A stretch of 64,000 nucleotides of DNA from Blepharisma stoltei ATCC 30299. Taxonomy: Eukaryota; Protista; Ciliophora. Under the pieces are notes generated by a model. That model saw only the letters and a program-made list of their open reading frames with translations. It did not search any database and was not told the origin of the DNA. The stretch is from the NCBI GenBank assembly GCA_965603825.1, contig CBFDEM010000053.1, positions 1,364,001-1,428,000 on the forward strand, read 5' to 3'. Positions 4,101 to 32,000 of the stretch are shown here, in pieces. Both the position numbers and the translations under genes were made by a program. The first letter of the stretch is position 1. Every line of letters begins with the position of its first letter.

Positions 4101-6523
4101 TAGACTGTTTCTGAAGAAACTTCGCTTAGGACTTCGACATCTGGGATGTATTTTTTGATTATATCAGTAATACGATCAGAGCAGTCCTTATCACTAGCTT
4201 CAATCCTCCTTACAATGGTGAGATTATAGCCTACTCCAAATCTTTTCTTCAAAAACAAAGGACTTCCCAAGCAGTGGACTTTCCCTTCCGCCATTATTGC
4301 AATTCTATCTGCAAGAATATCGGCCTCTTCCATATAATGAGTTGTCAAAATGATAATTCTACCGTTTTTATCGTTTCTCAGCATATCCCAAACCCTTCTT
4401 CTTGCTGACAAATCCATCCCAGAAGTGGGCTCATCAAGCATCACAATCTTTGATCCTCCTATGAGAGCGATTGCCAGTGAAAGTTTTCGTTTTTGGCCAC
4501 CAGACAGATTCCCTGCCTTAGTGTCTTTTTTATCTTCTAAGTCGACTTCTTTTAGCTTTTCATCAATAGCTTCTTTGATTTCTTGTTTATTGGTCATCCC
4601 TTTGAATCTGCTAAATAGGTAAAGGTGCTCATATACTGTTAGATTTTTAAATAGAATGTCATGTTGTGGACAAACACCCAAGTTTTTTCTTATAGCAGAC
4701 ATCTCAGAGTTGAAATCATACCCATCTACAGTCATGCTGCCAGCTGTTGGCTTAAGGAGTCCAGTTAGCATTGATAAAGTGGTAGTTTTTCCTGCTCCAT
4801 TGTGGCCTAGAAGTGCGAAAATTTGTCCCCTGAACATTTCCAGATCTAGCCCATCTACTGCAATTTTATTTCCAAAATGCTTTCTCAGCCCTCTTACAAC
4901 CATAGCTTGCCCTGTTTCTATTTGCTTAAGCAGCAAGGGCTCTTCTTTTTCGATTTTATCATTTCTCTCTAACTCTCTCCTCCTTTGTTCTTCTTCTTCC
5001 TTCATGCTTGCAAGTGCTTCCTCACTTAATCCAGAATCTGTTCCTTGCTTTCCAAGCCAAAAGCTTTTGGTGAAAGGGAAATACCACTTAAGTGAAACTC
5101 CATATTGTGATGGAATGACCTTATCGAAATAAAGTGCAAGTGTAAAATAAATTGCTGAGTCAACCAATAGCATAATAAATGAAGTCATGACTGTATAATT
5201 TTGAAAGTTGTCTCCCCAGTTGCTGAAATCACTGCCGATTTCATTCGCTTGAAGGTTCAATAAAGTGTAAAATCCATTCACCATGGCTACAGTATTAAAT
5301 ATTGACAAAGCTGTTTTTGTGCCCTGAGAAGTTGTGCTAGTTACTGCAAATATTGTGAAAAAGGTCATAAAGTAAATTAATATCCCAACCAAAATTGCAG
5401 TTTTGGCTCTTGAGAAAAATGAAACAATTAAAAAAGCAAACGCAATACATGAAATTCCGTAAAAGAAAAACAGTAAGAAAACCAAAAACTTGTCTGAAGC
5501 CATGAATAGTGCCCAACCAATAAGAGTTGAGAGTCCACTAATCACAAGGAAAATAAGTATATACATAATGATCCACGAAAGAAAGTAAGCAGTGTCTCTA
5601 AGTCCCATCATTTTCATAGCTTCCTTCACTTTTGTTTCTTTTTCAGTGGCCATCCTATTGATCAGTCTTGATATTGGAACTAAAGACGTTATAAACATTA
5701 AAAGCCCTAAAGTTCCAGCAAAGGCATTGGTGAAATTGTCTTCTATATATTTCATTCCATGAAAAGGGACAAAACCAAACTGCACATAACCTTCAGGTTG
5801 TTCTTTGGTTAAAAAGAAGTTATAAATCATATTTTGGATGCTCAAAAAGCCACTCTCGATGAAATCTTTCTGATAGACAGTCATAACACTTTTTTGATAA
5901 GTATTAACAGGTGGGAAAATACTTGTCTGAAAGATATCATACCAAGATCCATACACAGTTTGATCAGTAGGATCAGTGTCTGTGTAATTATATCGAATCG
6001 AGAATGTAGCATTTGGATAAGTCATTTTAACTCCAATTGCAAAGCAAATTTTCGTATGTCCTTTATCGTCATAGTCTTCATCGGTGACATAGTCGTCAAG
6101 CTTTCCCATAGACTTGAATATTAGAGGTTCCTTGTAAGTTCCATTACCATTGTCCAAGTATTGAGCGATTTGGGTCTTCAAATAGGCAGTTAATAATTGG
6201 GAGTTAGTATCATTAGTCTCTTGTGCAATCGCCCAAGTCCAACCATAAGGAATAAGCAGCTGACACCATTCAAAGGGGTGGGTTTGCTTGTTAGCTAGGT
6301 TATATAGCCCTTCTCCAGTTGAATTTTTAGGGCCTACTATCTGAAGATGGTTGAGGTATGATTTGGCGCTAATATGTTCAACAGGGCTAGATAGCCTGAG
6401 TATCACCATAAAGAAAATGAGGATTACAGGGAAAAGGATCTCACAAATAGATCCACAAAGCTCTCGCTTCCACAAAAGCCAGTTTTTAAAGAGCAAAGCA
6501 CGCAGATGACCTGCCAATGTCAT
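1196..6523 (-). CDS. ABCA-family full transporter, copy A (1775 aa)
   Basis: ORFs 2936..6523 and 1448..2935 plus a tail are one frame joined by TGA at 2936 and 1448; stop TAA at 1196-1198. Two NBDs (GHNGAGKTT/LSGGQKRKL/LDEPTSG; GVNGAGKTS/LSGGNKRKL/LDEPSAG), two TMDs with large exo-loops, C-terminal SQTTLEQIF. Confidence 0.95.
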
Positions 6524-7941
6524 ATTTATTCAACAAATTTATCTTCGAAAACTTCTGCATAAACTTGGGGAAAAAATTATTTTAGCATCTTGGAGAAGTA
6601 AGTTTTAGCTCTGCTTATGCAAATTTCGATGATTAGTGGATTCTTGCAAATAATAACTATTTTCAATTTTTTTTAAAATTATTGTTTTACTGAAAGTGCT
6701 TAGATCTGGAAATTATTGATATGTTGAAATAAGTTTTATCTGAGAAAAGAAATTGAAGCTATTTTTTGAGCAATAGCGACGGTTTTTGAAGGCCTTGATA
6801 TGGCCTGGAGAGGAAATGTAAATGGTGAACTTAAAAATAAAAGCTTTTAGAAAACTTCTAAAGAATAGATATATAAGAGTTGACTTTATTTTAAGCATCA
6901 CAGTCTCTAATTCATACCAAAAAATTTTAGATTTACTTTTAAAAGTCTGTTTTTATATCTTCGATTCATAATTCAAGCAGTAAATAATAAAATATTAATT
7001 ATTATATTATATATTTCTTAAGTAAACTAATAATTAGCAAAAATACCTTGAATTGATTAATGACTGTTCACTTCTAAAACAAAAATCAATTATCTTCATA
7101 ACGCGGGTAACAAAAATAATCATTTGAATTTTAGTAAATTTAAAATATGATCTCATAATAGACTCTGGTTCTAAGCTTATTCTGATTCTAATAATTTAAG
7201 CATTTAAAATTTCTTTATAAAAATGCTAATGTGGCTTTAAATATTAGCACCAATATAACATAACATTATAAGAGACTTATAGCAAATTTCATTAGTTGTT
7301 ACAAGCAAGAAAAACTCTAATTATTAGTTTTTTCAATTAAATGTTTAAGTAGAGAAACTCTTAGTTGAAATGGTAAATTATTTTAGATAGAAAGTTAAAG
7401 AAATTGGAATTATAATTTTTTTGCTAGAAAAGATAATTATATCCCATTATCTAATATATTTCCAATAATTATTGCTTAAAGAGAGGTAGATTTTAAATGA
7501 TGCACTAAAGTTTTCTTATTATAATACTGCTGCCATTTTTATGCTATAAAGGATGATAATTGATATTTTAGTATTAAAATTATATTCATTGGTCTAATTC
7601 TTAGCATCAGAAAATTAAGGCAATATATTTAAAAACTTATTTAAAAATAGTATAAAGCTAATCCTCTTTGTATATAAAAATTGAAGCATAGTAAACCTCG
7701 ATATATAATAAATAGATTCAAACTTTGAAGTTTTTATAATTTCCCTTCGATAAATATTTCAAACAAATTTATATAAAGCTAATTCACTTTTATAGTTAGC
7801 TCAGCATTTGATAAAACTACTAGCTAATATCTGCTTAAATGTCTAGCACTGACTCATTCTTCATTATGCTATAGATATTAAAACAGTTTAAAAACACCAA
7901 ATTTATAGTTTTCCATTTAATAAATAACTAATAAGATAATA

Positions 7942-10900
7942 TTATGCTGGTTGTACTCTTCTACTTAACCGAGCATTCGATACAACTGTTTCTGTAGCGA
8001 ACATGTTGAATATCTGCTCAAGCGTTGTTTGGCTTAAAGAATATTCGCTGATATTCAAATTATCTTTCATATGCTCTATAAGTCCAAAGATCTCACCAAT
8101 GCTCTTATTGTCTCCTTTCTCCACTCTAAATTTAAACGAAGTTCCATAATGCTCAATTAAGCTGACTTCATGAAACTGCTCTTTAAGCCAATTATAAATA
8201 GTTGCTCCATATATTTCTAATATGACCCACTCAACTAAAGTCTTTAAGTCAACGCACTGCTTTTCATTTAATTCTTCTCTTATATGAGACCCTGAGCCTT
8301 GCTTGGAAACCTCATCATAAAGCTGTGCACAGTTTAGCTCAGTCAGAGCTCTCAGTACGTTAACATCGTCTACAACATCGCCTGGGAGTATATTTTGAAC
8401 CCTCCGAACATCGCGGGCTATTTCATCTTCATTTGGATACTTGGCTTTCAAGAAAAACTCATAACCTGAGCCGAATTTATTCTTGATATGAGTTGCAGTG
8501 CCATGGCAGCGTAGCCTTCCAGCGACCATGATCCCAATAGTATTGCAGAGAGCTTCAGCTTCATCCATAGAGTGAGTAGTCAGAATTATACTAACCTTTT
8601 GAGATTTGATGCTATTGATAACTTTCCACATGTTTTTGCGAGCTTCAGGGTCCATTCCTGCACTTGGCTCATCTAAGAAAACAACTGGAGGATTTCCAAT
8701 GCAAGCAATTGCTACTGAAAGTTTTCTTTTATTACCACCACTTAATTTTCCAGCTCTGACAGTGGCATATTTTTCCAAGCCCATATCTTTTAATTGCTTT
8801 TCTACAAATTTAGGCACTAAGTGCTTAGGAATCCCTTTAATCTTAGCATAAAGCCTCAAGTGCTCAGTAGGAGTAAGCAATTCAGTTAAAGCATCAAACT
8901 GAGGGCAATAGCCAATATTGTATCTTGCTTCTGATAAATGAGTTATAACGTTGCAGCCATTTATATAAGCTTCGCCTTTTGTTGGGCCATACTCTCCAGT
9001 TAAAATTCTAAATGTCGAAGTCTTCCCTGCTCCATTAACACCCAGTAATGCAAAAGCTTCTTGGAATGGGACAATAAATGAAATCTCTTCAATTGCAACC
9101 TTTACTTGAGACTTACCAAACATCGTTCCGTACACTTTTCTGACTCCAGAAACCTTCACTGCGACTTCTTTTGGATCAGTTTTGGCAGCCACCTCTTTAG
9201 CGTTTTCCACATCATCGTCAGGCCTGTATTCGCTTTCGCCTGGATCTCTTGCTGACCCAATATTTCTGATCCACTGAACATTTCCAAGCCACTCAATTAA
9301 AAATATCAAAATAATTCCAATTACTGTATGGAAGCCAAGGAAAAAGACATCAGCGCCTGCGATATCCCAAGCCAATGGTGCTTGAACTTTTTCTCCATAG
9401 GCTGATGCATAAGCTTCTCTATTAGAGACATTCATAATTCCAAAAGAAAAGCAAAACATTGGAGACGCTAGTCTAAAAATGTACTGGAGCCCATCAGCGA
9501 CATTTCTTGTATCGTCAGAAATCAGCCTCAAAGTCCACACAACGGTAGCTGCGACAGCTCCCATGATCAAGTTATAAATGAAAATATAAAACTGGGCTAT
9601 TGAGTAATTCTTGAATAAAAAGCTTGAAGCATACGTATGTGGGCAAATCGCCACCCCGAATAGCATAAATAGTATTCAGGTCGCTGTGTAAATTTCGTTA
9701 TTTTCAGTCAAGCTTTTAAGATCAAAGGCTTGAATCATTAAAACAGATAAAATTCCAGGTATCATAAATTTCAGCAAATCCCATGTATAAGATGAGAGTC
9801 AGTAGGCAGGAATGGAGACCCCACTTACCAGATGCTGGTGCTTTACATTATTTTCTCTTTCTTTCACTATAAAAGTTACAAGCCCTGTCGGAATAAATGC
9901 CATTCCAATAGCAAAAATCATCGAAACATAAAAGGTTCCTGCATTTCTGGCTAAATTCTCTTGTTTTTTAGTCAAAGGTAAAGGCCAGTTGTACATTGAA
10001 ATTTTTAAATCCTGTCCAAGAGCGTATTGAGCTACTGCTTGCCCTAGCATATTTGCGTATGTAGGAGCAGCTTGGATTGCAGTCGTGTTATGGAAAATGG
10101 CTACTGCGAACTGTTTAGTAATATTATCAGTTTGGTAGAAGTAATAAGACCCCATTCTATAAGGATGATGATCTCTTTCATCATATATGTCTTGATCAAA
10201 GCTACTAATAGTTGAAGAAGATAAATCCTCATTTGTTAATTTTGATGTCGGATATTGGCGATTCATGTTATGAGAAATAATTTCTTTTGCATTAGATGAT
10301 ATAACTGGATCAGATACATCATAGTTCCATAAAACCTCCTGAGGAGTGCTATATTTATCTACAGTCAATTTCCAAGATTTTTGATCTTCAAATACACTAA
10401 CTTTGGTAAGGAGCGCAAGACCTCCAATAACCAGAAGCAGAGGCAAAAATATTTCTAAAACAAACCCTTTCAAGTCTCTCCATGAATATACTACACGCTT
10501 TTGAATTAACGCAAGGAAATGAGAAAAGAAGAGAATCCCTTTAAGACGATCTTCAGCGATATTAAATTTTCGAGCATCTGCAAGATCAGTTTCAAATTGT
10601 GAACCGTCAAAAGTGTGCTCAACACTGCTTTCGTCTCTTTTAATGCTTTTTCTTTTTTCTAAAACACTTTCATCGTCGCCTCTGGCAACTCTTATAAAGA
10701 CTTCTTCAAGGGTAGTTACAGATATCCCATAGTTTTCAATTTTCAGGTCTGCTGTTCTTCTATCAATTTCTTGGAATAGCTGATTAAAGATAATTGATGC
10801 AGCAAGAGGAAGCTGGTATGATGTTTCTGCTGAAACTTCAGTCAGAATTTCAGCGTCTGGGACATATTTTTTAATAAGGTCGGTGACCTGATTAGAGTAT

Positions 10901-13245
10901 TCTTTTCCACTTGCTTCGATTCTTCTATTAATAGTAAGGTTATAGCCAACTCCGAACCTTTTCTTTAAAAACAAAGGACTTCCTAAGCAGTGTACTTTTC
11001 CTTCAGCCATGATTGCAATTCTATCTGCAAGAATATCAGCTTCTTCCATATAATGGGTTGTCAAAATAATGATCCTGTCTTTCTTATCATTTCTCAACAT
11101 ATCCCACATCCTTCTTCTTGCAGTCAAATCCATCCCAGAAGTGGGCTCATCAAGCATCACTATCTTTGAGCCTCCAATTAAAGCGATGGATAAAGAAAGC
11201 TTCCTTTTTTGACCTCCTGACAGATTTCCTGCCTTCGTATTTTTTTTGTCTTGAAGCTCGACTTCTGTTAGTTTTTCGTCAATGGCTCTCTTGATTTCTT
11301 CTTTATCAGTCATTCCTTTAAATCTGCTGAACATTAAAAGATGCTCATAAACTGTCAGGTTTTTGAATAGGACGTCATGCTGAGGACAAACACCAAGGTT
11401 TTTTCTGATTTCGCCCATCTCTGTATTGAAATTAAACCCATTGACTGTCATAGTTCCAGAAGTTGGCTTTAAAAGTCCAGTCAACATCGATAACGTTGTA
11501 GTTTTGCCTGCTCCATTATGTCCAAGTAAAGCAAATATCTGTCCTTTAAACATATCCAAATCTAAGCCATCCACAGCAACTTTTCCCCCAAAGTGTTTCC
11601 TTAGTCCTCTGACAACCATAGCTTGCCCTGTTTCAATTTGTTTCAGAAGCACATTTTCTGCTTCTTCGATTTTATCATTATTTTTTAGCTCTCTTCTTCT
11701 TTTTTCTTCTTCCTCCTTGATTCCAGCTAGTTCTTGCTCACTAAATTCTGAGTCATTTGTCTGATGTCCCATCCAAAACGACTTGGTAAAAGGAAAGTAC
11801 CACTTCAAGGCGACTCCATATTCTGAGGGAATTACTTTATCAAAATAAAAAGCAAGAAGGAAATACACAATAGTATCGATAGTAAGCATAATCAGTGCAG
11901 TAGCAACTGTATAATTTTCATAAACATCCCCAGCTGATGAGAAATCAACTTCAACTTGATTGGCTTGGAGATTAATCAAAGTAGAAAATCCTGTTGCCAT
12001 CGCTACTGTATTGAAAATCGATAAACCAACTTTTGTTCCTCGAGGGGTAGTACTGGTGACTGCAAAAAGAGTGAAATAGGTAATGAAAAACATCAAAACT
12101 CCGACTAAAATAGCTGTTTTGGCTTTAGAAAAAAAGGAAGAAATCAAAAAGCAAAACCCTATACATGATAAGCCGTACAAGAAAAACATCAGAAAGACTA
12201 AGAATTTATTGGAGTAATTGAATAACTCTCAGCCAATAAAAGTTGAAAGGATGCTGATGATTCCGAAAATTATGATGTACATAATGATCCAAGAAAGGAA
12301 GTAAGGGGTATCAGTAAGTCCCATCATTTTCATAGCTTCTTTGACCTTTGTTTCTTTTTCTGTTGTCATCTTATTAATGAGTCTTGAAACAGGCACAAGT
12401 GACGTAATGAACATAAAAAATCCCAATGTCCCAGCAAACCCACTCATAAAGCTATCTTCGATATATTTCATTCCATGCATAGGAACAAATCCAAACTGTA
12501 AGTAAGCTTCAGGCTCTTTCTGACTTAAATAGAAGTTATAGACCATATTCTGGAGGTCTAAGAACCCACTATTTGCAAAGTCATGCTGATAGGTTGTTAT
12601 TACACTCTTTTGGTATTTATTGACCGCTGTAAAATAGCTTGTTAGAAAAATATCCCAAGAATCGCCATAGACACTTTGATTATCTGGATCTGTATCGGTA
12701 TAGTTGTATCGAATCCATATTGTTGAGTTAGGATACTTCATCTTTATTCCGACAGCAAAACAAATTTTTGTATGACCTTTATCATCGTAGTCTGAATCTG
12801 TTATGTAGTCTTCTAATTTATCCATTGTAGAGAAAATCATTGGTGTGATTTGGCGATCTGTATGATTTTCCATCTTGAGCCAAACATTTTCAGTTAAGTA
12901 CGTTTTGAGTGCTTGGGAATTGAGATCACCTGTTTCATCCACAATTGCCCAGGTCCAGCCATACTTGATAACTTGTTCGCACCACTTAAAAGGGGTGTAA
13001 CCAAGGTTATACGTCTCGTTATACAGCCCTTTGTTGTATGAGTTTATAGGGCCGACAATTTGCAAGTCTTTTTCTAGATATGATTTAGCACTTTTGTGCT
13101 CTGATGGTAAAGCTAATCTTAAGAGAACCATGAACACAATAAGAAGAACTGGGAACAAAATTTCACACATTGACCCGAAAAGTTCTCGCCTCCATAAAAG
13201 CCAGTTTTTAAACAGCAACGCTCGTAGGTGACCGACTACTGTCAT
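7942..13245 (-). CDS. ABCA-family full transporter, copy B (1767 aa), tandem paralog of copy A
   Basis: Three ORF fragments in one frame joined by TGA at 12229, 9799 and 9676. Collinear with copy A along its full length, same Walker A/B and signature motifs. Confidence 0.95.
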
Positions 13246-13981
13246 ATTTATTCGACAAATTATCTGGTGAGATATATGGATTTATGCTGGAGAAATAATA
13301 AAACAAGGAAAAATTGCCTTTGAACAGATTATTGAAGAAAAGGGTTTAGACAATTATTGATAAGCCAGAGGCAAGACTTCAAGTGGCCATTCAAAATATT
13401 TTGAATTAGATAATTATTCGTACAAATTTTTATGGCTCTCAGAGAGCTCTATTTTAACAATAAAAATTTAAAATAATAAATTATCTTATTCATTTGAAGG
13501 ATAAATATCTGTGACTAATTGCTTGTGGAAATTTTTGAATAATTTCATCCTCGTATTAAAATATAATTAATTTTCGACATTAATATCATAACGAAATAAT
13601 ATAAAAGCATCTGAGTGCTAAGAATAATTGATCTGGTTGGCATAGAAATTATTGCATTTTGGTAATAAATAAAATGATAATAATAATCTCCAATACTTTT
13701 TAGGTTTTTATTAATCATGCGTTACGAATTTTGTGGAAAAGCAGCACAGCTTTGAATGCAAATTAATGAGGATGCTTAAGGATAAACAAAAGAAATTAAA
13801 TCAAATTTTGGCCAAAACTTGCAATTATCTATATATGAAACAGATTTTTAATTTAGCCTTATTTTGAAAAGGCTTAAAAGTAGAAAAAAAGAAGCACAGA
13901 TAAAGCTTAATTTTATCCTCAATTTCTCATAATTTCTCTCAGACTCCTAATAGTTTTCTTCTTTCTCCAAATAAAATTAAG

Positions 13982-15232: not shown

Positions 15233-16876
15233 TTAAGTATTTTTTATTGGCGGAAGATCTAAGGAAGATTTTGTATTCTGAAAGATTAAGCTATGGGAAT
15301 TCCTTTTATGTCTTATAGGGTTTTTAAAGGAAGTATTTATGGTATTGCAACCTTCATCTCGAGTTAAGCTCAGGTCCAGACTGCGTTCAGTTTTACACTC
15401 TTTGTCTTCTCCAATTCAGTTTACGAGGGTTCCTAAATTTCTATATAGATCCTCTCGCTTCTTTTTAATTGAGTTAGGATTTTCACCTGTTTTTAATAAC
15501 GTTCTGCAGAGTGCTAAGACCAAAACAGCTGTCAACTCCAATTGTCTCTTTGCCAAATCATTATTCTGAGATATTTTATTAATATCTTCCTGTTTTCCCA
15601 TCACTTTTAATATATCAAAAATCTCTATTTTGTCTGCTTTTCTGTTTATTTCTTGATAAACTTGTTCAAGTGTCCTTGCAATCATACTTACATCTTGATT
15701 ATCTCTTTTAATAGACTCAAACCTGCTTATCACACTTTGCATGGAGCTTTCCAAAGCTTTCTGTGAATTGTAAATGGCAAGAATCTGTGATTGAGTTTGA
15801 GAATGCTTAGTGTTATTCATATTTAATTGCTCTAAAAACATAGATTTTGTGACGAAGCTAGGAAGCTGCTGCTTTACAGCTTCTAAATCATCTTTCGATG
15901 ATTTTTCTAGCAAAATTTCATCAAATCGTTCCAGCACAAAGCTGAACTTGGTAACTGAAGTTTGAGCTGCTTCCGAATGAGATCTCATTTCAGAAACGTA
16001 GGAGCTTATATCAGTTCTCAGTTCTTTCATTTCTGATTTATTTATTTTGTCTTCAACGTTTTTCTTGATTTCGCTGATGTCTTGAGCCCATGGTGAACTT
16101 TCAATATATTCTTTAAGCGAAAAAACCTTTGACTCTGTTCTCTCTCGAACTAATTCAAATGTATTTTTAACATAATCTATTTTAGAATTCGTCAATTCAA
16201 TGTTTTCTTTCAAAAATTCTTCACATTTCTTGATTTTCTCAACAGTATCTTTATTCTCGTTTTCTAGTTTTTCGAATTTTTGATTAATTTCTTTAATTAG
16301 TTCCATGGCTTGCTCCTTTGTTTCGAAGATTTTCATAGTATTTTCTACTTTATTGATCTTTGCACGAGATTCTTCAAGTTCAGATTTCAATGCAAAATTT
16401 TCAAATTTCGCTTTTTCTTCTTCAAAAATCAGCAAGGGAGTCATTGTGTCTACGTATTTTTTTAAATCTTGAAGCTCTTTTGAAAATGCCCTTGCGTAAA
16501 GAGCAGTTTTTATGTCTTTGATGTTTTCTTTGTTATCAAGATCAGCATATGTGAGGACGTTAACTTCGTTTCTCATCTCGTTAATTAAAATATTAAACCT
16601 TGCGAACTCGCCTGAAATGCTTCTATTTATGTCATTCATGTAGCTTTTATAGTCAAAAAACGATTTTTTGACTGAATTTACTTCTTCAGAATTTTCTGCT
16701 TTGGATTTTAAACAAATAATTTCTGTTATAGTATAATTTTTGTCATTGGGGAGATTCATTGATTCTTTTATTGCTGATATTTCTTCAATAAAAGCATTGA
16801 ATGGTTTGAGTGTTTCTTTAAGTTGGTCAATTTGGAGTTGTAGAGAGATTGGCTCTTCTGGAAAAGATTGCTCCAT
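15233..16876 (-). CDS. Long coiled-coil protein of unknown function (547 aa)
   Basis: ORF 15416..16876 continues through TGA 15416 for 60 codons to TAA 15233-15235 (ends LDLPPIKNT). E/K/L-rich heptads. Confidence 0.75.
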
Positions 16877-16897
16877 GTATTTATTTTATTTACATTA

Positions 16898-18934
16898 TTA
16901 ATCAGATGAAATAATTGAGTTTACAAATTTTAAGAACCTTGCGCTATAAGCTTCACTGTTGATTGATGAAATATCCTCCTTTTCAACGTTTGGTTTGATA
17001 ATACTTTTGCTTATCGTTTCGATTTTTTTAAGGCTGTTATAAGTTTGCAAATAATCAATGATCCCAACGACATATGCATTTTCTTTATCTTTGTCAGAAG
17101 ATTTTAAGTAATGCTTACTATTGCTAGGAGTTGGAGTGCCAATCCCAAGCAGCAAGGAGTAGTCCATAATATTTAGCTTTGAAAATAACTTTGAGTCTTC
17201 ATATATCTTTTGCTTCAAAGCTAAGCTATCACTGTAGCTTACATATAAATTCTTTTGGGTTCTTAAGAAATCAAGATCTTTATAAATGAGATCATTAGTG
17301 AGGTCAGCTAATGAGTCTGCTTGCTGTCCATGAATGGATTCTCTGTCAAGTTTGCTTCCTTTCATATCGAAAATTGCTTTTAAATTCATAGGTGGGAAAA
17401 TATTTTGCATAATGATCAATTGAAGATGACTGTTTTGAAATTTCAATGAAAAAAACCCTAACAATCTTGCTATAATAGAATTTGGGTGATTTTCTATATG
17501 ATGGTGATAATTTTTCAACAAAACTTCCAGCAAAACTTTTTTTTCTTCTCTCGTAATAGTTTTTATTATATATTTTTTGTCATGTGTAAAATAAAAAAAT
17601 GCTGAGCTTCTCCCACCTTTGTTCCCTGTGTTTTTCTTGATCATTGAAATATTGAATATGGGATGGAATGATGAAATCATATCATGATCATTTATTCCTT
17701 CTAAATTTCGCAAATGTCTGAACACCAGTGGGGCATATTCTACGATTTTGCAATGAAATCTCATAACTATATATTTTTTACAATAATTAATTAATGTGCC
17801 ATCTAGTTCAATTTTTGATAAATCCTCTTGTAGCATTTCGAATTCATAGACTTGCTTATAAAAATCAACGCTGCATTTATATTACCTTCAAAACTTAAAA
17901 TCTTTTTCCTCCTGCATATAATCCTTTTCCTGAGAGCTTTTCAAAAAAATCAAACAAACTGACACAAGTGAAGTCAAAACGGCATCAGCATAAACTGACT
18001 GGAACATATGGGTGTAAGAGGATTCATAGACACTGGAAATTCTAACATCAGCAAGGGATGTCCCAATTTCATTTGTGGCTTCGTTTAAAATAGTTGTAAT
18101 TGTGTTTTTAAAAATTTTTGGGTTTCGGAGGCCAAGTCTTTTCCTTATCCAACGGACAAAAGCTGGGTCTGAAAGTCTTACTGAGTTTATTGCTAAGCCA
18201 GAAATGCTTGAAAATGTCAGCGAAATGTAGCTTAGCCAAGGTGCTGTGACGCCTTGGTCATCTTGAATTATCGTGCTTAAACTCATAGGAATCCAAAATA
18301 AACAGTAAACTTGTAAAAACAGTGCATGTTTCCCAAGAAGAGTTTTCAAGGTTTCTGATCGAGACTGTCTAATGTAAATAAAAGAAAAAACAACTCCTAG
18401 AATGCTAAAAGGATAATAAATTATAAAGGGGATAAACATCAGCTTCCTATATAGAAATTACGCCGCTCAGGTACCTGATTTTATAAAGCAGGCTTCATTT
18501 GCAGATTTTCCTGCTGAACTTGAAATCCCTACAAGGAGGACTATTAAAAATCCAAAAAAACAGCTTGTGATATGATACAGTGGCGATCTTTTTTTGTAAT
18601 TCCTATTTGTAGGACTATTTATTGTCAAAAGCACCTCAATGCTGAGACTCAAGCTATAATTTCAGCTTATAAAAAAACAGCAGATAGTAAACATCCCTGC
18701 TATTTCGCAAGTAAAGTCTGAGAGGCTTTCTCCGGTTATTCAATAATGGACAGCGCTATAGGTAATTTGCAAGTCAATCACATGCTGCATGAAGCACTGT
18801 CAGAAAATAATCATCCCTGGGTGTTTTCTCAATCCTTTAATTTTTGCATAAGCAATAAGAACTAGCAATCCAGTTATGAAAGAAATAAGTCCAAAGGTAG
18901 AGTATACTAAAAATTTGTACTGCGTAATGTTCAT
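16898..18934 (-). CDS. 7TM GPCR-like receptor fused to a C-terminal phosphatidylinositol-phosphate kinase (GPCR-PIPK, RpkA-like), 668 aa, 3 exons
   Basis: ATG 18934; five TGA=W; two 15-nt introns (18447-18461, 17871-17885). Seven hydrophobic segments, with TM3 C..AG...SW.Y....E typical of the cAMP-receptor-like class. PIPK motifs GGRSSAFFYFT-D-KYIIKT, FDMKGS, KDLDF, MDYSLLLG, IIDYLQ. Confidence 0.85.
17871..17885 (-). other. 15-nt spliceosomal intron GTAATATAAATGCAG
   Basis: GT...AG, 15 nt, A at position 10, contains an in-frame TAA. Removing it joins the 7TM part to the PIPK ORF in frame. Confidence 0.85.
18447..18461 (-). other. 15-nt spliceosomal intron GTAATTTCTATATAG
   Basis: GT...AG, 15 nt, A at position 10, contains an in-frame TAA. 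Removing it joins TM4/ECL2 to TM5 in frame. Confidence 0.88.
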
Positions 18935-18942
18935 ATTTATAA

Positions 18943-21276
18943 TTAATTTAAATTACAAAAAGAGAATGGGACAAACTTTATTCCTTCGCCAGCATAAAAT
19001 TTATTTTGAAATTCAACCCAATGGAGTCTTAAAGTGTGCAAAAAGCACTCAATTGAAGCCATCATTAGCAAAACTATAAAAGTTGCAAGGACAAAAGCAA
19101 AAAATCCAATAGCAACCAGAAAAGGATCCCCAACTTTAATCGGATCGAATACGCACATAGTAAGAAAAGTTTTTGATAGTTCAAAATGAGCAAGAGATAA
19201 TGCCCAAAGCCTTAGATATGATGCTGAATTGCTCACTACGCCTACCGTCGTTTCTATAGTAAAAATTAGTTGTTTGGTGAATTCTTCAAAAAAATCAAAA
19301 TCTTCAATTTGATTGATCTCTTCATAGTGAATTCTTTTGGAGCGGATATACCTCAGGTATAAAGGCTTAGGTAAAAGCATAATAGGAAGACATAGTAAGG
19401 CAATTAAAAATAAGCAAGCTTGCAAGGATTCTTGGCTTTCTCTATTGCCCCATAGAGGTTTTTGTCCGTGAAGTCCACCGAAATCAAGGAAAATCCCTAA
19501 AAATGTGTTTATCAAGCTAGGTGCATTGTCATCATAGTTATAGTTTCAATCTTGGTTTCATTTAATAAAAATCATGCAGACCAAATATCCAAAAAGGCTA
19601 AGCATAAATATAAATTGAGGCATGACCTCATAATAAAAATCAATCCTCTTCTTAAATGCTATAGAATTTAATCCTTTATACATTATTCCAATAGTCATAT
19701 GGAGAACACCAAAAATTATTGAGATTTTCATTTTAAAAGAATTCAAAAATGATAATTCGTTATCAGCTTTTGACCATATCGGATCCAATCCAAATGGATA
19801 AGCAGAATCTTGCTCATATTCTCCTGATGAGTTTTTCTGTCACTTTGAACCGAATAAATTCAAAGGAATTCCAAAGAATTCATTGTATATAAATCCGGAG
19901 TACATCGAAAATACTCCCATAGTTAAAATAAGATATCGGTAAGGAGCTGCCGCGCTCAAAATACCATTCGAAATTTTCAATTTTGAATGCTTTAAACATA
20001 GATAAGCACCTATCAAAGTTAAAATTAGTCCATGGCCTATATCTCCAAGCATGATTCCAAAAAGAAATGGAAAAGTTATGCAAGTAATCGGAGTCGGGTT
20101 TATTTCTCTATATGAAGGGATTCCATAAGTATCAATCAACCCTTGTATAGGGGCTGTAAAATCATTTAGTTTGAAAAAAGAAGGAGGAGTTAAATATCGA
20201 GGGATTTCAAAAACTTCTTTTAAATCTGCCCTGCCTTCGCCGTATTCATTGATAATGACTCTTATATAGTCTATTTTGCTTTTAGGGCACCAGCAGTTGC
20301 CTTGCCATAGTGTATTGCTTGTATCAAACATATTAAGCGTTTTAAAAATTTCTTTTTCTTTGAGAATGAACGATTGGTATTCATATATCATAGAGTAAGC
20401 GCCATTGTCAAGTTTTGGCTTACAAAATCTTTGAAGAAGGTCTCTCAAATTCTCTTTTGTCTTTTCTGCGATGGATTTGTTGTTGATGATTTCAAGGTGT
20501 AAATAGTTTAGCAAATCGTCCATTTCGTTAGGGTTACCAGGAATTTCAATGCGTAGGCTGCTCATAGCGTCACATATTCTCCTCAGAGAATTTGCAACTG
20601 CACCTTCTTCATTTCCCATGAAGACTATGAAAAATATAGCCTGATCTAATTTCTCATCAGTTTTGGGGTCTAAAATTTCATCTTTTAAATCATAAATAAA
20701 AGTTAAACAGTTTCCTCTTGTAACTCGAAAAGCCATCCTCTTTAACATTTCTGATTCATTTTTATTTATTACCCCAGCAAACTTTGCAAACAAAGATAAA
20801 TTTTCTTCAACCCCTTGGAATCCAAAAATTTCTTTTGCTTTTTCCAGCACAGTTTTCTTTTCAATTAAAGAATTAGCCATCCTTAAAAGCTGCTCATAGC
20901 TTCGAAGCTGAGTTAAGATTTGATTTTCAATTAAAGCGAGTTCTTCTTCAACCCTTTCAAAAAACGCTTGTTCCGGCATTTTAAAGATTTCCAGTTCCAA
21001 ATCTATGTCTTCTAGCAGCATTTCGGGTATTGCAGGGTCTAAAAGCGGAATTTTGAAACGATGAATTTCTTGAATAATAAAGGAAATTCTCCTTAATGCT
21101 TCTTCAGATCTTCTTATATAAGCTGAAAAAGTTCTATTAACTATACTACGCTTATTGTTCAAGTCTATGAATTGAAGAGCAGATAATTTCCCAAGCTCAG
21201 TTAAGAGTTTTCATGCCACGTCAGAATGGGTGATTAGAGCATAGTATCCCATTTCTTCAGGTCTGAGCAGCCCCAT
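18943..21276 (-). CDS. V-type H+-ATPase V0 subunit a (777 aa)
   Basis: ATG 21276 (MGLLRPEEM..., LQFIDLN). Fragments joined by TGA at 21211, 19840, 19558, 19546. Motifs YGIPSYREINP, YPFGLDPIW, NSFKMK, SNSASYLRLWALSLAH (essential Arg present), LRLHWVEFQNKFY. Confidence 0.95.
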
Positions 21277-23054: not shown

Positions 23055-26000
23055 TTAATCATCTTCTTCCCATCCTGCGGAGGCTGATCCATCCAGATCG
23101 ATATCAGTGCAATGTGTGATTGCGTACAGCAGCTTGTTCTTCATTGTTTCTTTAGTAGTGTAAGGAGGCAAATCTATCGTAAAGAAGCAAGTGTGTGTGA
23201 CTGGCATATAGTTATTAACTGGTCCAGGAGGATTATATCTTGTAATAGTCATGTGCTTCCAGTCTCTCCCAGATGGTAGCTTCGATCTTCCCCATACGAA
23301 TTTCAAGTACAAAGCTCTTTCCTTAGGTATCATTTCAGTAAGGGCTTCCCAGAACCAGACAATGTGCTGATCAGTTGCACTGCAGTTGCTATAGTCAGTA
23401 TTGGCTTTGAGAATATCGATATCAATATTGGCAGCTCCACAGACTAAAATTTCTAGCTGTTTCCAGCTGAACAAGTTCAAATAATCAATTGGCACGACTG
23501 CGCTCATGCCCTTTCTAATAGCTTCATAAGCTTTAGGATTCTCAGCAAGTCTGTATTTTTCTACCAAATCTGCATACTGCCCTGCATTTTCATAGGTGAC
23601 AGTAATATCTTTGCCATTTTCGATAAGGTCAACTTCACGACCTGAAGAATCTTTGGTAGTGAACTTCACATCGTATGCATAATTGAAGTTTTCTGGTGTC
23701 AATTGGTTGGCTTCAAGGTTCCTTAAGATTTCCAAAATCTGTACACAGCAGACATCAACTCCTCTAAGGTCTTTAATAGAGACTGGATCCATCAAAAGCC
23801 TCTTCCAAAACATTGGTGGGAATGACAATCCTAAGTTGTTCTGAGTTCTTATAGCAGCTCCCATCACTTTTCCGAGGAAGACGTAGAGTTCTAAGTCCTG
23901 CTTGCTTTCTGCTGCAGGGTTGATGATCCAGGATTCTCTGTTTTCTCCAATGTTATGCACATTGTTAGGACAAGGTACAAGAAGTCTCAAATAAGATGAC
24001 TGCAGCTCATCTACCATGTTGCTGATAGATTCGTTATAAGGACCACCGGCATCAGTAGCAGCTTCACCTCTATAGCTGACTCTATAGAACCTTTCAGAGT
24101 TTCTGAATTCTCTATTCTGCTTGCTGATCAAGGCTCTGTAGATCTGACCAAATATTGAGAACTGTCCTAGGGTGTCGACTTCTTTTCTGTCCCTATGTCT
24201 TGCTGCTTTAGGTCTATCTATGGTTATTTCAGTCCTTACATCCACATTAGTCTTTGAGATGCAGTCCTTGAGCAGAGTGTTCTTGATCTTGAAGAAAATA
24301 TAGCTTTTAGAGCCTGCGAATACCCTTTGCAGTTCAGAAATGCCTTGCTGAGGATCAATATGCAAGTTGAATAAGTAAAGAGATGCCTCAACTCGTTTAT
24401 TGAAGTTAAGCAAAATCTGATATAGTCCTCTGATGTCGTCTTTGCTGAGTTTTTCCAGCTCTGGGTAGTAAATCAGTTCTGCTTCAGTTGGGTCGATTTC
24501 TTCGTTAGTAAGGGCTAGCACGTCTTTGCCTTTAGACTGGGTGAACTCATCAAGATAAATCACTAGCTGTTCAGCTGCTCCAGTGCAAAACAGTCGCTTA
24601 AACTTAGCTGAATAGGTGTCTCTCCACTCGGTCTTGATCTCTTCAGTTGCAAAGCTGAGCAGTGACTCAATCACTTTCATATTTCTGCCTTTGAAGTCTG
24701 GGATCACCTTGAACTTGTAGCCCCAAAGGGTCGAATCGCTGCCACTTGCAATATTCAGAAGGTCCACATGTGCTGGAATTGAAGGTCTTTCTGAAAGAGT
24801 CACAGCTTGTTGAGGAGCTGTTAAGACAGCAACAAACTTAAGTGGTTCAGATTCTTCAGTGAACTCTGTGCCCAGATTTTTAGTAGCTATTTGTTCTCCA
24901 TTCTTATAGAAAGTAAATGTGCAGGCGTCGAAGTTAGCATGGACTCCAATGACATCATGTAAGCCAAAGCCGTCAGTGTCACTGTATAAAATCATGTTGG
25001 TCTCAGCTTCAAGGTTCTTGTTTTCAACTGATGACTTCATAGCCAAGCCAATCCCAATTCTTCCTTCGCTGTTTACAGTTGCTTCTATATAATGATTTCC
25101 TGCTCTAAGATCAACGCTGCTTTCATATATAGAGTTCCCTTCGTCAACCTTAGTGATTGTTAGTTTTCCATCAGATCTATTAGCTGAGTCTTTAGCACCA
25201 AGCCAGAAGTGGCTCTTGTTAAATCCAGAGTTTACAGGGAACCAGGCATAGACGGTGTCTCCATTCACTTTAAGTTTTTTCTTGTCAATTGTAGCTTCTC
25301 CAAAGCCAAGCTTTTCTACACTTTTGATAGACACCAATTGGTTGGATCCACCAAAGCAGATAGCAGGGATGACACTTTGAGAAAGTCCAGTGAATTTGTA
25401 AATTTCTTCTTCGTTCTTAAAGAAAGTTAGCTCTTTGGAATCTGCATCAATCAACATGACTACAGTATCGTTGGTTCCATATCCAGCTCCTGAGGTATTT
25501 GAGCCTTTCTTATGGAATTCTCCACTCTTCTTCCAAGTCCAGACTTCTCTTGAACAGTCGCTGCCAATATACTCGCTTAAATTGTAGTCAGTACCATCTG
25601 ATTTTATGACTCCAATGTACAGATAAGCTGAATCTCCGTCGTTGTCTATGTGCAAAGAAATCTTGATCTTTCCTGAACTGTAGCTTTCATTGAAAATTGC
25701 AGTTCCCCAGCCTGAAGAGGTGGTTCTGGTGACTGTCTTGTTGTTGTTTGATAAGGCAATATCAGGACCCTTTGGCATGTCAGCCCAGTTTGATGATGAA
25801 GACTCAACACCAATGACTGTTTTTTCGATAGAGGATTTACCTTCTTCGTCATAGCTGAAGAAAATGGTGTCTCTTGGCTCCACTTTGCTTTGAGAGTCGA
25901 ACTCAATGTTCAAAAAGGCTGCACCTGGGATTTGAATTCTTTCGCACTTAGTTTGTCTATTGTAAGGATGGGAAGACTCCCTGACCTGCTCGGCACTTGC

Positions 26001-29000
26001 ATTGATCTTGCCTTTGAAAGTTTCGAAAATGAACATCTCCAAAGCTTCATCTTTGTCAGTCAGTCCTTTCATATCAGAAATCAGCTCATTGAGCTCAATA
26101 AACCATGGCTCCTGTGGGCCAGAATAGCCAAGACCGATAGCTTTCACTAATAACAGAACTAGTGTTTGTAGTAAAGGATGGCTGGCTTTTGTAGACTTAT
26201 TTGCATTGTAGAGCTCGTTGGCTTCAGAGAAAAGAATCTTGAAAATTGACTGGAGGGTTGGGCTGGAGTTTTTCATAAACGATTTCAGTATGTTTAAAGA
26301 TCTAGATTTAGACTCAATGTCAGGGGAAGCCAGCATGAATAAGAAGAGGGTCTGTAAGAATCGTGTGGAGTTAAGCAAATTAAGCTCATTGTCAGTTCCT
26401 ACAAGCAGAGAGAATTTTTCTAGCAGCCAAAGAGCGACGTCTGGCTTCATATCAGGCTTTTCTCCTGAGCCTACTGGAATAACGTCAAACTTGTAGCCCC
26501 AGTAGTGTACTGAGCCATCACTATGGAAATAGGTGTAAACAGTGTCTCCTTCAACGTCAAATGGCTGCCAGTTGCTTTCACCTTGACCTGACAAGCACTT
26601 GATTTCTCCTTGCCTGCCAGAGTTTTGGTAAAATCTCAGTGGATCGCAGCCAGATTCTGTATAGCATTGAGGGTCGAACTCAATTCTCAAGCCTTTTGCA
26701 CCTGGGATTGTGATCACATCATCAACGTCCATGCTGTCATTATAAGGATGCAAACTTTCAATAGTAATTGTCTTCAATGCAACTGCAGAAGTCTTTGCAA
26801 TTAAGCAAGACAGCAAAATTGCTATGCACTCAGTAGCAGCTTGAACACGGAAATCTTGCTTATCTAAACTGCTGAGAAGCTGTGTGAATGGGCCTTCCAA
26901 AAGATCAAGCTCTGTGTCAACAAATGACAGAAGTTTTCCAAGATTTAGGCTGTTTGAAGCTTGGACAATGATATTAGGATTTTTCTTGAGCACACTTACC
27001 AATAGTTTCCTTGATGTAGAAACTCTGCGGTTTTCTTCAATATCATATAAGTAGTTATAAAGTTCCATAATGGTATAGCCATCATACGACTTTTCTTCTT
27101 CTTTCTTATTTACTTTTGCTTCTGAAGTTTGGTACTGGTCTACAAGCCCGAAAGAATTTCCTTTGACTGATAAGTTTCTCAATGGGAACACATTGCAGTT
27201 CATTATGGTGTCACTGTCCTTGATGCCGACCAATATGTAGTGGCCTTTTTCTTGCTTTCCAGCAATATTAATAGCTTTCCCTTCTTTATCGGTAACAAGT
27301 CTGAACCCATGAGGCAAGATAACAGAGTAAATTGAGCTGACCTTGATAAATGCAATATCTTTAATTGGGATATTTTTCTTGTCAGGAGCTGTAATTTTGA
27401 TGTAGACGTTGTTTTTCCTTTCATCTTCTATGCTTAGATCGCCGATGTCAGCGTAGTCTCCAGGATTTTCTGCAACAGAGAAGCCAGTGCAGCACTTTCC
27501 AGTCAAAAAGTTTTCTTTCTTCATAGCCAGCCACTGCCTGTGAGCCATTTCAAACTCAATTGGGCTGCCGTTTTCGTAGACTTGGACGACTGAGTAGTCT
27601 TTAGGAATCAGGTCTTTTGACTTAAAGATCTTTATGTCAGTGATGGTAGCTTGCTCTAAGGACAATTGAGAGCTGGATATACTGTCGTCTGGGACTGAAG
27701 TCAAAGTATGCTTTACAATTGATGATAGGCTATCATTGGAACTTAAAAGTTGAGTTACTTCTTCATCAGAAAGTCCCAAAAGTTTTAATCTAAGTCTGTC
27801 TAAGTTTTGTGGCTTAGTCTTAATTCTAACATATCTTTCACCACCTTCTAAGTCTTTAGCTTTTTCTATCTTAGCTTGTAAGCCACCTTCATATTTTCCT
27901 TCATAGACTTCAAATGCAAGTAAACTTATTGAAGCACCTTGCTTAAGGTAAACCCCGTAGTCGCTAATCTTGAAGCCGTTAAATACACCACCTGTCGTAA
28001 TTTCTCTTCTTTCATGGCTGATTTCGTTTACAACTGTGATTTCTCCTGAAGAGCTTGCGTGAATCCTAACAAATAGCTGTTCTGAATGGCTAAATTCATG
28101 CTGGCTCACTTTGTTAATAGTAAAGTGAGAGCTGCCTGCTTCTGATTTCCACCCAATCTTAAGCTTTCCGATTTTCAGTCCTCCGACTAAGCTGTCATTT
28201 TTAACCTTTCCTTCTAAAACAGCCAAAATTGTGACCATAGAGCACTGTGAGTTGACTCCGTGGAAAATAGAATTGTCTAAGGTGTTTAATAGTTCTTTTC
28301 TGTCTGCTGTATTTTCAGGATTATTTATCACGAAATGGTAAAGGCCGTTCTGGTAGAGCTCAGACTTGCCTGAGATATCTCTGGCTTTGAAGGAATTATC
28401 TTCTAAGGCTCCAAGTTTATAAAGTTGGACAGTTTGCTTTTCAGGCTTGACTGGTTCTTGCCAACTAATCACAGCATCTCTTTCTTTGATACCTTGCTCG
28501 AAGCATTTGACAATTTTTACAGCTGGGACATCAAGAGAAAGCAGTTCAGTTGCTAACAGTTGGTCAGCTTCTGCATACTGGGCGATTTTGGCTTGAGCTT
28601 CTTGTTCAGTCATTTGGACTTCTTCTTTAGCTTGTGGGTTCGCATGAAGTTTTTTGGCGAGTTCATTGATAATCTTGGAATAAACATTCTTGCTTGTAAA
28701 CGAGAACGGCTTGCTACGATCTAGAATTCTCCTAATAATGCTTTCTCCCTCAGATTCTTGGACACTTTCTTTGGATTCAAGTATGTCTAGTATTGCGACC
28801 ATAAAAGCGACATCTAGTTTGGCATATAAGATTCTCACATTTGCAATGGTCTCACTAGGAGCGAATATTAAATTTTCTCTGCTATCTTGAAGATTTTCCC
28901 AGAAAGAGACAATGACTTCACTGAGACTGTCTTTTTCTTCTGCAGTTAAATGATCATAGATCCTTGTATTGATTTGAGCCTCAAGTCCTTCAATTTTTTC

Positions 29001-32000
29001 TAGTGGCTCAGTTGCCATTGAGTCTTCGTTTACAGAGTAAAAGTTTGCGTTAGGGTGGTTGATTTCTCTGATAACTCCTCTAGGGATAGAAGAATTGCTA
29101 AGTCTTACCTGTGACAGGGTAATTGGGACTATTCCATAACCATCAAAGTTCTTTGAAGATGCTGATAACAAATAAATGGCTCCTGTATGGCGGGCTTCAA
29201 GCGGCTTGTTCTGGCTAATATTTGCTTTGCCATCTTGCAAGGTTTGTATTAAAGTTTCCACAAGCTCAACTCTCCACCTATCTACCTGGGCTAGAGAAAG
29301 AAGCAAGCTTTCTGCTTCATAAGCCCATCTCAAGGAAATTTCTTTAAGATTTTCGTGCTCATACCAGGTCACTCCGTTGCCAATCTTGCTTAACAGATAA
29401 GAAATAAGGTCAACTTTGGTGTCAGGGAGGTCTTGTAAAGATTCCCAATAAGGCACCAAGGTCTGTGGAGAATGCTGGGTTGGGATGATGTGCCTTAGGA
29501 TTCTGGCTCCAAAAGTAACTATTTTAGAGGATGGGACTGCGAAGGTAAGCTGGAGAAGAGTCTTGAAATATGATTCACGGGCTAGAAGCTTAGGCAAGCA
29601 TTGGGAACCCAAAGATCCATATAAGCTCCAAAGCAGTGAACCTAAATAATCAATTTGACTAGCAATTGCTTGGGAAGCTGTCTTACAAGTATGTGGCAAG
29701 TCTCCATAATATGACAAAGAGTCTTGGATTTCGTTATAAAATGAAGCGAATTTCTCATGGTCTCTATTGATTGCGTTAACAGTGACGTAGAAATCTAATA
29801 AGCCAGCTTCATCTTTGAACTCAGCTGGGGTGTTTTCTGGGATCTTATCTGCAGCAAGGATGCCAGGCTGCTCTGCTGTTCTGAATAGTTCGATGTAAGT
29901 CCTAAAGGATGCTCCTTCTGTTGGCTTTAATTTTCTCTCGAAGTTATCTATAACTCCATTGACATTTGTTAAGTCATAAGCGGCTGCTGCTTCATAATAG
30001 TCGTATGGCAGTTCTTGCCAGAGTTTAGAGCCATTCATGTATTCCTGGACATCTGCTGGGAATTGATCACTAAGTCCTTTAAGCACATGTAAGTACCTGA
30101 AGAAGTCATATTCTCCTCTGTTATTTTTATTTTCCTCGTAGCTTTCTAAGGTTTCTGCAATGGATCTTTCTAGTCTGTTTAAATCTTCTGGGGTCAAAAT
30201 CCCTTTCATTGCAGGGTCAGCCTTTTCTATGAACTCATTGATGATGTCTTTGAGGACACAGCTGGAAAACTTCTCAGTCTCATGTCTGAACTGTCTAAGC
30301 CACTCTTGGACAGGGTTTCTTTTCAGTTCAGCTGGGATCACGTTTTTACCAATCCAACTGTCACCTCTGGCTAGCTGAGCAACTATCAAAGGACTTTCAT
30401 CAGGGGCTGTGAATAGTTTATCATATTTTAGCTCGCTGAAAATAGTTTGCATAAACAGTTCTTGAATTAGTAGCTTTTTGGTTTCGTTTGTCTCTATCCA
30501 CGATCCTGCAATTGAGTATAGCAGCTGCTTGAATAAGGCCCAGGACCCTTTGCTTAGTCTTGTTCTGAGCTCATCTCTTTTCTTTTTTTCTTCTTCTGGT
30601 TCTGGATCTAATAAGGTATCATACTCTGTAAAGGTAAACTCTAAAGTATCAGAAACTCCTGTCAGATATTTGTTATTTGGTTTCTCGTCATCTCTTTTAA
30701 CTAAAATGAATTTTGTCTCTCCTCTGAATGTAAATTCTCCGCAAGCGTCTTCATATCCTTCTAAATTTCTTTCAGATGACAGTACGGCTTCAGTAATAGG
30801 CTTTGAGCTTCCTGCCTTATCGATGACCAAATAAACTTTTGGCTCATCTGGCCTTTCTTCGAGCAGTATTTTAGTAGCGTTTTCTGGCACATCCGGCTCA
30901 GGAAGGACACCAAATCTAGTAATGCAAAGCTCTTTCTTGAATGGGCGGTGAATTTCGTCTTCTCCTATGTAGCCTTTGGCCCATTTTAGGAGATGAGTAA
31001 TTGTGGTTGGGAATTGTTGCTCCAATATCAAGTGGCCGTCCGTTCCTTTTAATGGGCAGCTCATTGCTTCGAGGACAGTCAAATAATGGGTATAGTCCGT
31101 TTGCTTCAGCTTCTTTGGTCTTGGCTTTGACAGTTCTTTTTGTAAAGTGCCATAGACTTGGAAGAAAGAATGCTGGACACAGTGAAGCAGTGTCGGGTCT
31201 GTTCCTTCTAGGCCAACCCAATAATGGTTTTTCTCACTTTTGATTTTCAATGAGTCACTAAAAGCTTTAACTAAGGCAGATTCTTGCTTATTGCTAGAGC
31301 CGATTAGGTTAGCAAACGAGAGGAATCCAAGAGTTCTAGCAATCCCTTTAGTTCTTCTTTTGTCAATAAGACTTACTATGGCTTCAACTGGGACTGAGGA
31401 TTCCAAAAACTTGGTGACAAGATCAGCGACCTTCAAGAATTCTTTGACATCTTCGTTTTCTGGCTCTTTAGTTTTGGAAGCAAGACTTAGAAGTCCTTTA
31501 AGCTTAGATGCTGACTTGACAGCTTCTTTGACAGTTTTCCATTTGCTGCCAGATTTAAGCTTGCCTGAGTCTTGGCTCTGTATTCTTGCTACATTAGAAA
31601 GTAAATTTTTCATGACTTTGCTGACCCCAAGCTCATTCAAGCTTAGCTTATAGTCAGTTCCTAGTAACAAAGCGCATTTCGTCACAATATCTTTATTAAT
31701 GTCGCTATAAGTAATATCTGGTTTGCCGCCATCCATAAGTTTTTGTTTCTGTTTCTGTGCCCAACCTCTAATAAGGCTGCTCTGCTTCACAATATATTTC
31801 ATAGTAGCGCCTATGTCACTTGGAGCGTCAAAAATCTTATTCACAGTGTCAACTGCTTCAAAGAAGGCTGTATAAACAGCAAAAATCGCCCTTTCAGCTT
31901 GATCCATTTCTGCTCCTCCTATATTAGCGGCAGGTCCTACCACTCCTGACTTTTTCTTTAAATTAGCCCAAGCACTGGTAACTCTTTCGCTCCCTTCTAT

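Follow-up and report, generated by a model that had tools for sequence, protein, structure and literature searches.

A spliced, UGA-recoded GPCR-PIPK gene of Blepharisma stoltei predicted to encode a membrane-tethered PIP 5-kinase

Results

Gene model, genetic code and splicing

The window, the whole stretch of 64,000 nucleotides of Blepharisma stoltei DNA analysed here, carries a GPCR-PIPK gene between a V-ATPase subunit a gene and a coiled-coil gene (Table 1). The encoded chain is composed of a predicted seven-transmembrane (7TM) domain, a helix 8, a linker and a C-terminal PIPK domain. The gene has no earlier start, because an in-frame stop codon precedes the ATG. The published macronuclear genome of B. 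stoltei is 41 Mb in size, with 64 contigs, 25,711 genes, introns of 15-16 nt and UGA read as tryptophan (bioRxiv 10.1101/2021.12.14.471607); the genome analysed here comprises 41.46 Mb in 64 contigs. Five in-frame TGA codons, all of which had been recognized in an earlier sequence-only reading, start at 18802, 18742, 18664, 18469 and 17890 and encode residues 45, 65, 91, 156 and 344. With TGA taken as a sense codon, 16 of the long frames of the window terminate in TAA and 2 in TAG. A frame of 4060 codons at 23058-35237 (minus strand) contains no TGA, unlike the membrane genes nearby. No tRNA was found in the window.

Table 1 Features of the GPCR-PIPK locus, in positions of the window
Feature	Position	Strand	Description
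V-ATPase subunit a gene	18943..21276	minus	upstream, 8 nt before the ATG; separate RNA contig
7TM-PIP kinase gene	18934-16898	minus	ATG at 18934, TAA at 16898-16900
Exon 1	18462..18934	minus	473 nt; start codon, TM1-TM4, ECL2; four UGA-Trp (18802, 18742, 18664, 18469)
Seven-helix membrane domain, ~aa 4-249	18173..18925	minus	Dicty_CAR/GPR157-like fold, transferred from paralog P0001
Intron 1	18447..18461	minus	15 nt, GT-AG, in frame, contains TAA; omitted in X1-X3 contigs
Exon 2	17886..18446	minus	561 nt; TM5-TM7, helix 8, linker, first kinase helix; one UGA-Trp (17890)
Helix 8, amphipathic, basic, aa 251-262	18134..18169	minus	after TM7; H251-261 in the paralog model
LR(x)9GI position, here VY-x9-SV, aa 309-321	17957..17995	minus	from alignment columns
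Intron 2	17871..17885	minus	15 nt, contains TAA; omitted in X1-X3 and X5 contigs
Exon 3	17782..17870	minus	89 nt; part of kinase N-lobe
Intron 3	17767..17781	minus	15 nt, in frame, stop-free; omitted in X1-X3 and X5 contigs
Exon 4	16898..17766	minus	869 nt; PIPK catalytic core and stop
Coiled-coil gene without family	15233..16876	minus	downstream, 21 nt after the stop; separate RNA contigs

Splicing was assessed on assembled contigs of four runs placed on positions 15300-19600. The runs are presumed to be RNA, since their contigs lack introns and break between genes. Contigs of X1, X2 and X3 each omit all three introns at full contig depth, and those of X5, from a second organism that is about 94% alike, omit introns 2 and 3; rare variants drop out of contigs, so that partial retention of intron 3 would be missed. 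The two micro-introns of the sequence-only reading are thus both spliced out, and a third one has to be added, which had been overlooked because it is in frame and free of stop codons. The two-intron model gives exactly the 668 residues claimed, with no internal stop; the three-intron model gives a mature protein of 663 residues. Apart from the three introns, no 15-mer of the gene combines a GTAA start, an A at position -6 and an AG end. GT-AG 15-mers at 18578, 17869 and 17616 do not have the GTAA and the -6 A together and are kept in the contigs. A joint between 17872 and 18481 in X2 derives from the contig of a paralog, as its loose ends match the paralog on contig C13. The C13 paralog has introns at the positions of all three: one identical in position to intron 1, one shared with intron 2 and a stop-containing homolog of intron 3. 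Introns 2 and 3 have counterparts in the paralog on C44, and the ortholog locus L041 contains intron 3 and lacks intron 2. The spliced model served for counts of length, motifs and hydropathy, and homology searches were run with single exons, open pieces or full-length relatives.

Both halves on one transcript

A single contig extends across both halves of the gene in X1 (16924-18924, 1956 nt) and in X2 (16909-18926, 1973 nt), with intron 2 removed. Separate transcripts for the 7TM and kinase parts, or an intron 17871-17885 that is never spliced, had been named beforehand as evidence against a fusion; neither was found. In L041, which belongs to another species with UGA-encoded tryptophan, the chain from about TM5-TM7 onward through the kinase is one genomic frame, its exon 4 is 74% identical, and the same coiled-coil gene follows. 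The metagenome locus L054 has an intron-free frame of 642 residues from its Met in the standard code. It can be aligned to all four exons one by one, and four of the five UGA-encoded residues are tryptophan in it as well. In annotation, paralogs appear as single proteins of 657-682 residues (B. stoltei CAG9314984, CAG9327682 and CAG9323259). A word search of the protein collection with the queries P0001 and A4 returned three to four proteins, and the gene's own annotated protein was not among them.

The stops that the raw track shows under the standard code would favor an artefact, that is, a pseudogene or two genes joined in the reading. The spliced contigs that span both halves in two runs refute this explanation, the uninterrupted frames of L041 and L054 and the single-protein paralogs also speak against it, and its chance is negligible. 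Since the RNA contigs, the intron-free relative, the folds and the motifs agree, the GPCR-PIPK gene is real and expressed, and it encodes a single fused chain of 7TM and PIPK parts, as originally read.

Membrane half

The N-terminal half is predicted to form seven transmembrane helices with a GPCR fold, by transfer from P0001, the closest full-length paralog, which has 53% identity to the gene in exon 1 and 48% in exon 2, with the helices ungapped. The AlphaFold model of P0001 contains helices at residues 3-30, 39-66, 73-105, 111-139, 155-184, 188-217 and 224-248, followed by helix 8 at 251-261, with pLDDT of 60-86 over the seven helices and helix 8. The model resembles the class A neurotensin, opioid and beta-1 receptors, with a target TM of ~0.6. 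An Atlas model of the same region reaches TM of 0.86-0.88 to Dicty_CAR/7tm_2/GPR157 clusters. The seven helices of the sequence-only reading are present in the paralog model and are not recovered by hydropathy alone, in which TM2 is polar (about 0.9). Residues 308-326, which are among the seven strongest hydropathy peaks, were rejected as a transmembrane helix since they form the first kinase helix.

No Pfam family, of GPCRs or otherwise, was above the cut-off on the pieces of exon 1 or on exon 2; the best GPCR match of the gene's own pieces is Dicty_CAR, below the cut-off, with E 0.074 over the first 44 residues. In the profile check suggested earlier, for Dicty_CAR/7tm plus PIP5K, the kinase is positive (see below), the gene's own membrane pieces stay below the cut-off, and the relative L055 passes the Pfam Dicty_CAR cut-off with E 3e-5. 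Cys76 (18709-18707) at the top of TM3 and Cys149 (18490-18488) in ECL2, both noted from the sequence, do not vary among seven distant full-length relatives and form a probable disulfide. The protein has no ectodomain, as TM1 begins near residue 4-9. N-glycosylation requires a distance of ~12-14 residues from the membrane. The NIT sequon claimed for the protein occupies residues 2-4, within a few residues of TM1 on its N-terminal side, and paralogs do not conserve it. Because of this position and lack of conservation, it was rejected as a functional glycan site and is unlikely to be used.

Kinase half

The linker between helix 8 and the kinase is ~40 residues long and has pLDDT under 50 in the P0001 model. 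Exon 4 matches Pfam PIP5K with 206 bits and E 7e-61. Its best solved relative in the PDB is PIP4K2B (E 8e-33), and it is closer to PIP4K and PIP5K (E 1e-32 and 1e-24) than to PIKfyve (E 3e-18). The motifs read from the sequence are all intact: IIK, DLKGS, MDYSL and IID at residues 441, 508, 575 and 610, with the G-loop at 425-429, Lys443, Asp508, KDxD at 537, Asp576 and Asp612 (663-residue numbering). The catalytic residues are invariant in an alignment of 52 PIPK rows. The PIPK domain ends the chain, with no further domain after the kinase. A model of the linker and kinase of the ortholog has pLDDT 86 and pTM 0.86, and its kinase superimposes on PIP4K2A and PIP5K1A with Z 30-31 and rmsd 2.5-2.9 (Z 31.4 and rmsd 2.5 for PIP4K2A). 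The fold evidence thus comes from a paralog (P0001) for the membrane half and from an ortholog for the kinase.

The activation loop contains the sequence KKxE at residues 621-624, with the lysine pair at 621-622 and Glu624 at +2. A glutamate at +2 after KK is a signature of 5-kinases (PMC3823935). We infer from this Glu-type loop that the predicted specificity is that of a PIP 5-kinase; the loop does not distinguish PI4P 5-kinases from PI3P 5-kinases.

The LR(x)9GI position

The LR(x)9GI motif has been called unique to GPCR-PIPKs, placed probably outside the kinase and likened to helix 8; of 60 members from outside the oomycetes, 9 lack it, most of them from ciliates (PMC5784254). It was not found in the Blepharisma protein, which has the degenerate VY-x9-SV in its place in the 52-row alignment. 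The degeneracy does not exclude family membership, because motif-less ciliate proteins are counted as members (PMC5784254). The variants are MQ-x9-GL in L054 and LK-x9-GL in the paralog on C33, and close relatives keep GL or GI.

In the same 52 rows, the GI column of the motif falls on the G-I/V that ordinary PIPKs (type II, EF-hand and others) conserve in their first helix. The superposition of the ortholog model begins at model residue 29, just before the motif, against residue 32 of PIP4K2A, in the same register as the alignment; the numbering of the first helix in PIP4K2A is the one that we presume. The true helix 8 is separate and located ~45 residues before the LR(x)9GI position. LR(x)9GI is thus probably the kinase fold's own first helix and not an analog of helix 8, as judged from the alignment and from the model of a degenerate member, not of a canonical LRxGI protein. 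If so, the published reading of the motif as family-unique and helix-8-like would need correction, and the motif would speak less strongly for a single origin of the family.

Relatives in the genome

A profile of seven relatives detects at least 11 full-length 7TM-PIPK loci in the genome, and the gene matches positions 1-638 of its 645 in one frame. The paralogs on C4 (L050:3500-5494, plus) and C25 (L051:3630-5700, minus) have Asp-to-Glu changes in DxKG and MDYS and have lost the G-loop. By these residues they are probable pseudokinases, and their similar flanking genes suggest that they are a segmental duplicate. In the kinase tree, calculated from exon 4 with neither RpkA nor named oomycete sequences included, the gene groups with the ortholog L041 (100/97), then with C13 (96/86) and then with C44 and L054 (96/97). 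It is placed among the ciliate-type 7TM-PIPKs, apart from five EF-hand PIPKs, and three LRxGI-bearing proteins fall elsewhere. The gene is an additional member of a known, poorly understood family and not a new architecture.

Stand-alone Dicty_CAR genes of ~300 codons give nine matches in the genome (C4, C10, C24, C29, C35, C36, C47 and C58), likewise with no G-alpha partner. At the C13 locus, a frame of 386 codons (L042:6408-7565, plus) abuts the stop codon of the closest paralog.

G-protein components

A PF00503 search of the genome for G-alpha gave 16 matches, all short and below the cut-off; the two that were inspected are Arf-family GTPases, and a very divergent G-alpha could escape such a search. 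G-gamma had no match in the genome in a search run without a positive control. Ciliates have been reported to possess only G-beta (PMC3971589). These results strengthen the earlier suggestion of a receptor that can do without a G protein. The genome contains one strong match to a canonical PI-PLC and eight RGS-domain matches, two of which are 7TM-RGS genes in the window. These 7TM-RGS-like genes are arranged in tandem at 54191-55342 and 55371-56513 (minus strand), and the first matches Pfam RGS with E 1e-8.

Neighboring genes and the V-ATPase

The upstream V-ATPase gene is the most divergent of three subunit a genes in the genome. Its RNA contig overlaps the first ~11 coding nt of the GPCR-PIPK gene (18923-18945), and the two transcripts probably overlap. 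The promoter of the GPCR-PIPK gene would then have to lie within the upstream gene. The downstream coiled-coil gene is syntenic in L041, where an ABC2_membrane_3 gene is also located downstream. In both species the kinase stop and the coiled-coil gene share one reading frame, across spacers of 21 nt (16877-16897) and 24 nt (L041 ~1472-1495). Read-through into this gene, or a polycistronic trio, was rejected because the kinase frame is followed by two TAA codons and the contigs neither bridge 16866-16909 nor join at 18923-18930. Farther along the window, two tandem frames of ~1780 codons (1199-6538 and 7945-13281, minus strand) resemble ABCA transporters.

The genome's only V-ATPase D gene is located ~150 nt downstream of a GPCR-PIPK paralog on C62 (C62:537425-538165; L049:2925-3665, minus). 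A second V-ATPase adjacency among the other 20 neighbor slots has a Poisson P of about 0.01-0.03, assuming 14-40 V-ATPase genes among 25,711, and the estimate is partly post hoc. No V-ATPase neighbor was found at the other-species loci L052, L054 and L055, and the L041 sequence ends before its upstream gene; a conserved linkage was therefore rejected. The adjacency is a weak lead. In Dictyostelium, acidic endosomes and phagosomes carry RpkA, whose kinase domain mediates the co-precipitation of VatM (subunit a) and VatC, and rpkA mutants have unchanged endosomal pH (PMC3206951).

Discussion

Proposed function and alternatives

We favor the reading that the gene encodes a membrane-tethered, 663-residue type IV PIP 5-kinase that acts without a heterotrimeric G protein, and consider it reasonably probable. 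The 7TM part would keep the kinase permanently on the cytosolic side of a single membrane, most probably that of the endosome and food-vacuole system, by analogy with RpkA. This putative location is weakened because it is drawn from an amoeba and the ciliate clade may have a separate origin. The kinase would phosphorylate the 5 position of a phosphatidylinositol monophosphate, most likely converting PI4P to PI(4,5)P2. The lipid product would itself be the output, acting on trafficking, actin and V-ATPase handling and as a substrate of the PI-PLC encoded in the genome, without a heterotrimeric G protein as intermediary. A ligand from the lumen or the outside, bound in the disulfide-capped pocket, may shift TM7 and helix 8 together with the extended first helix of the kinase, and thereby tune the kinase's access to the membrane; the chances for and against this step are evenly balanced.

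The closest competitor, somewhat short of an even chance in our estimate, is that the 7TM part does no more than anchor and sort a constitutive kinase, which is regulated by trafficking or phosphorylation and not by a ligand. The missing ectodomain and the long, disordered linker would fit such an anchor; the TM3-ECL2 cysteines and the polar face of TM2, kept in distant relatives, suggest a maintained pocket instead, and the divergence of 7TM parts among the at least 11 paralogs also argues against it. A different lipid is conceivable too: an endolysosomal PI3P 5-kinase, PIKfyve-like, would produce PI(3,5)P2 and serve V-ATPase assembly or activity at the food vacuole. The Glu-type loop is common to type III kinases (PMC3823935), RpkA binds the V-ATPase (PMC3206951), and both the gene and its C62 paralog adjoin V-ATPase genes, in the latter case with the partly post hoc P value given above. 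The greater similarity of exon 4 to PIP4K and PIP5K, several other large PIPK loci in the genome, the loci of other species with no V-ATPase neighbor and the normal endosomal pH of rpkA mutants (PMC3206951) make this lipid unlikely. Still less probable, and offered as speculation, is that GPCR-PIPKs are ligand-gated, G-protein-free controllers of the food-vacuole V-ATPase via local phosphoinositide synthesis, with the gene pairing as co-regulation and the signal passing from helix 8 to the first kinase helix. The RGS matches, including the two 7TM-RGS genes in the window, keep a small chance for a hidden G-alpha, and toxin and antibody data from ciliates have been interpreted as G-protein activity (PMC3226668). 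Against the uniformly short, sub-threshold PF00503 matches and the reported absence of G-alpha from ciliates (PMC3971589), a conventional GPCR that also signals via a G-alpha-like protein is highly improbable.

Comparison with known systems

How GPCR-PIPKs work, in terms of ligand, activity and use of G proteins, is an open question, and no ligand or in-vitro activity has been reported for any of them (PMC12716839). A literature search for complementation of yeast mss4 found nothing. The Blepharisma gene offers a usable test object: a compact, expressed member with intact motifs in a cell with no detectable G-alpha, accompanied by pseudokinase paralogs as natural controls. The gain is modest, because Tetrahymena and Paramecium already offered the same test situation.

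The sequence-only reading had compared the architecture with Dictyostelium RpkA and oomycete GPCR-PIPKs. Such fusions are indeed known there; the comparison missed the at least 11 copies in this genome and the ciliate members, published for Tetrahymena, Paramecium and Stylonychia (PMC3823935, PMC5784254). The ciliate GPCR-PIPKs form their own clade and may have arisen separately (PMC5784254). The ciliate type IV PIPKs comprise Tetrahymena TtPIPK2a-c and 15 Paramecium PIPK2 genes (PMC3823935). The Blepharisma gene shares with them the 7TM part and C-terminal PIPK, the intact IIK, MDYSL and IID motifs, the glutamate at +2, the multi-gene family and a host without G-alpha. L054 matches ESM Atlas clusters of 59-207 mostly ciliate PIP5K proteins with a score of 0.98. 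The Blepharisma gene differs from those of Tetrahymena and Paramecium in its heterotrich host, UGA-encoded tryptophan and 15-nt introns; the KK pair is complete, in contrast to QK in TtPIPK2a, and a signal peptide and an ectodomain are lacking.

GPCR-PIPKs of oomycetes, sponges, choanoflagellates and haptophytes have the same domain order, with a 7TM part of the cAMP-receptor/GPR157 type (PMC5784254, PMC12716839). The Blepharisma protein differs from them by VY-x9-SV in place of LR(x)9GI and by a compact kinase with a short insert. RpkA, likened here by its description, has the same architecture and is a predicted PI4P 5-kinase (PMC3206951); it is longer (constructs extend to residue 828), is encoded by a single-copy gene and belongs to a host with G proteins. 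The soluble PIP4K2A/B and zebrafish PIP5K1A (PDB 6ux9, 1bo1, 6cmw, 4tz7) have the same fold from the first helix onward and the same catalytic residues; they lack a membrane domain, and the specificity loop of PIP4K contains an alanine where the Blepharisma protein has a glutamate.
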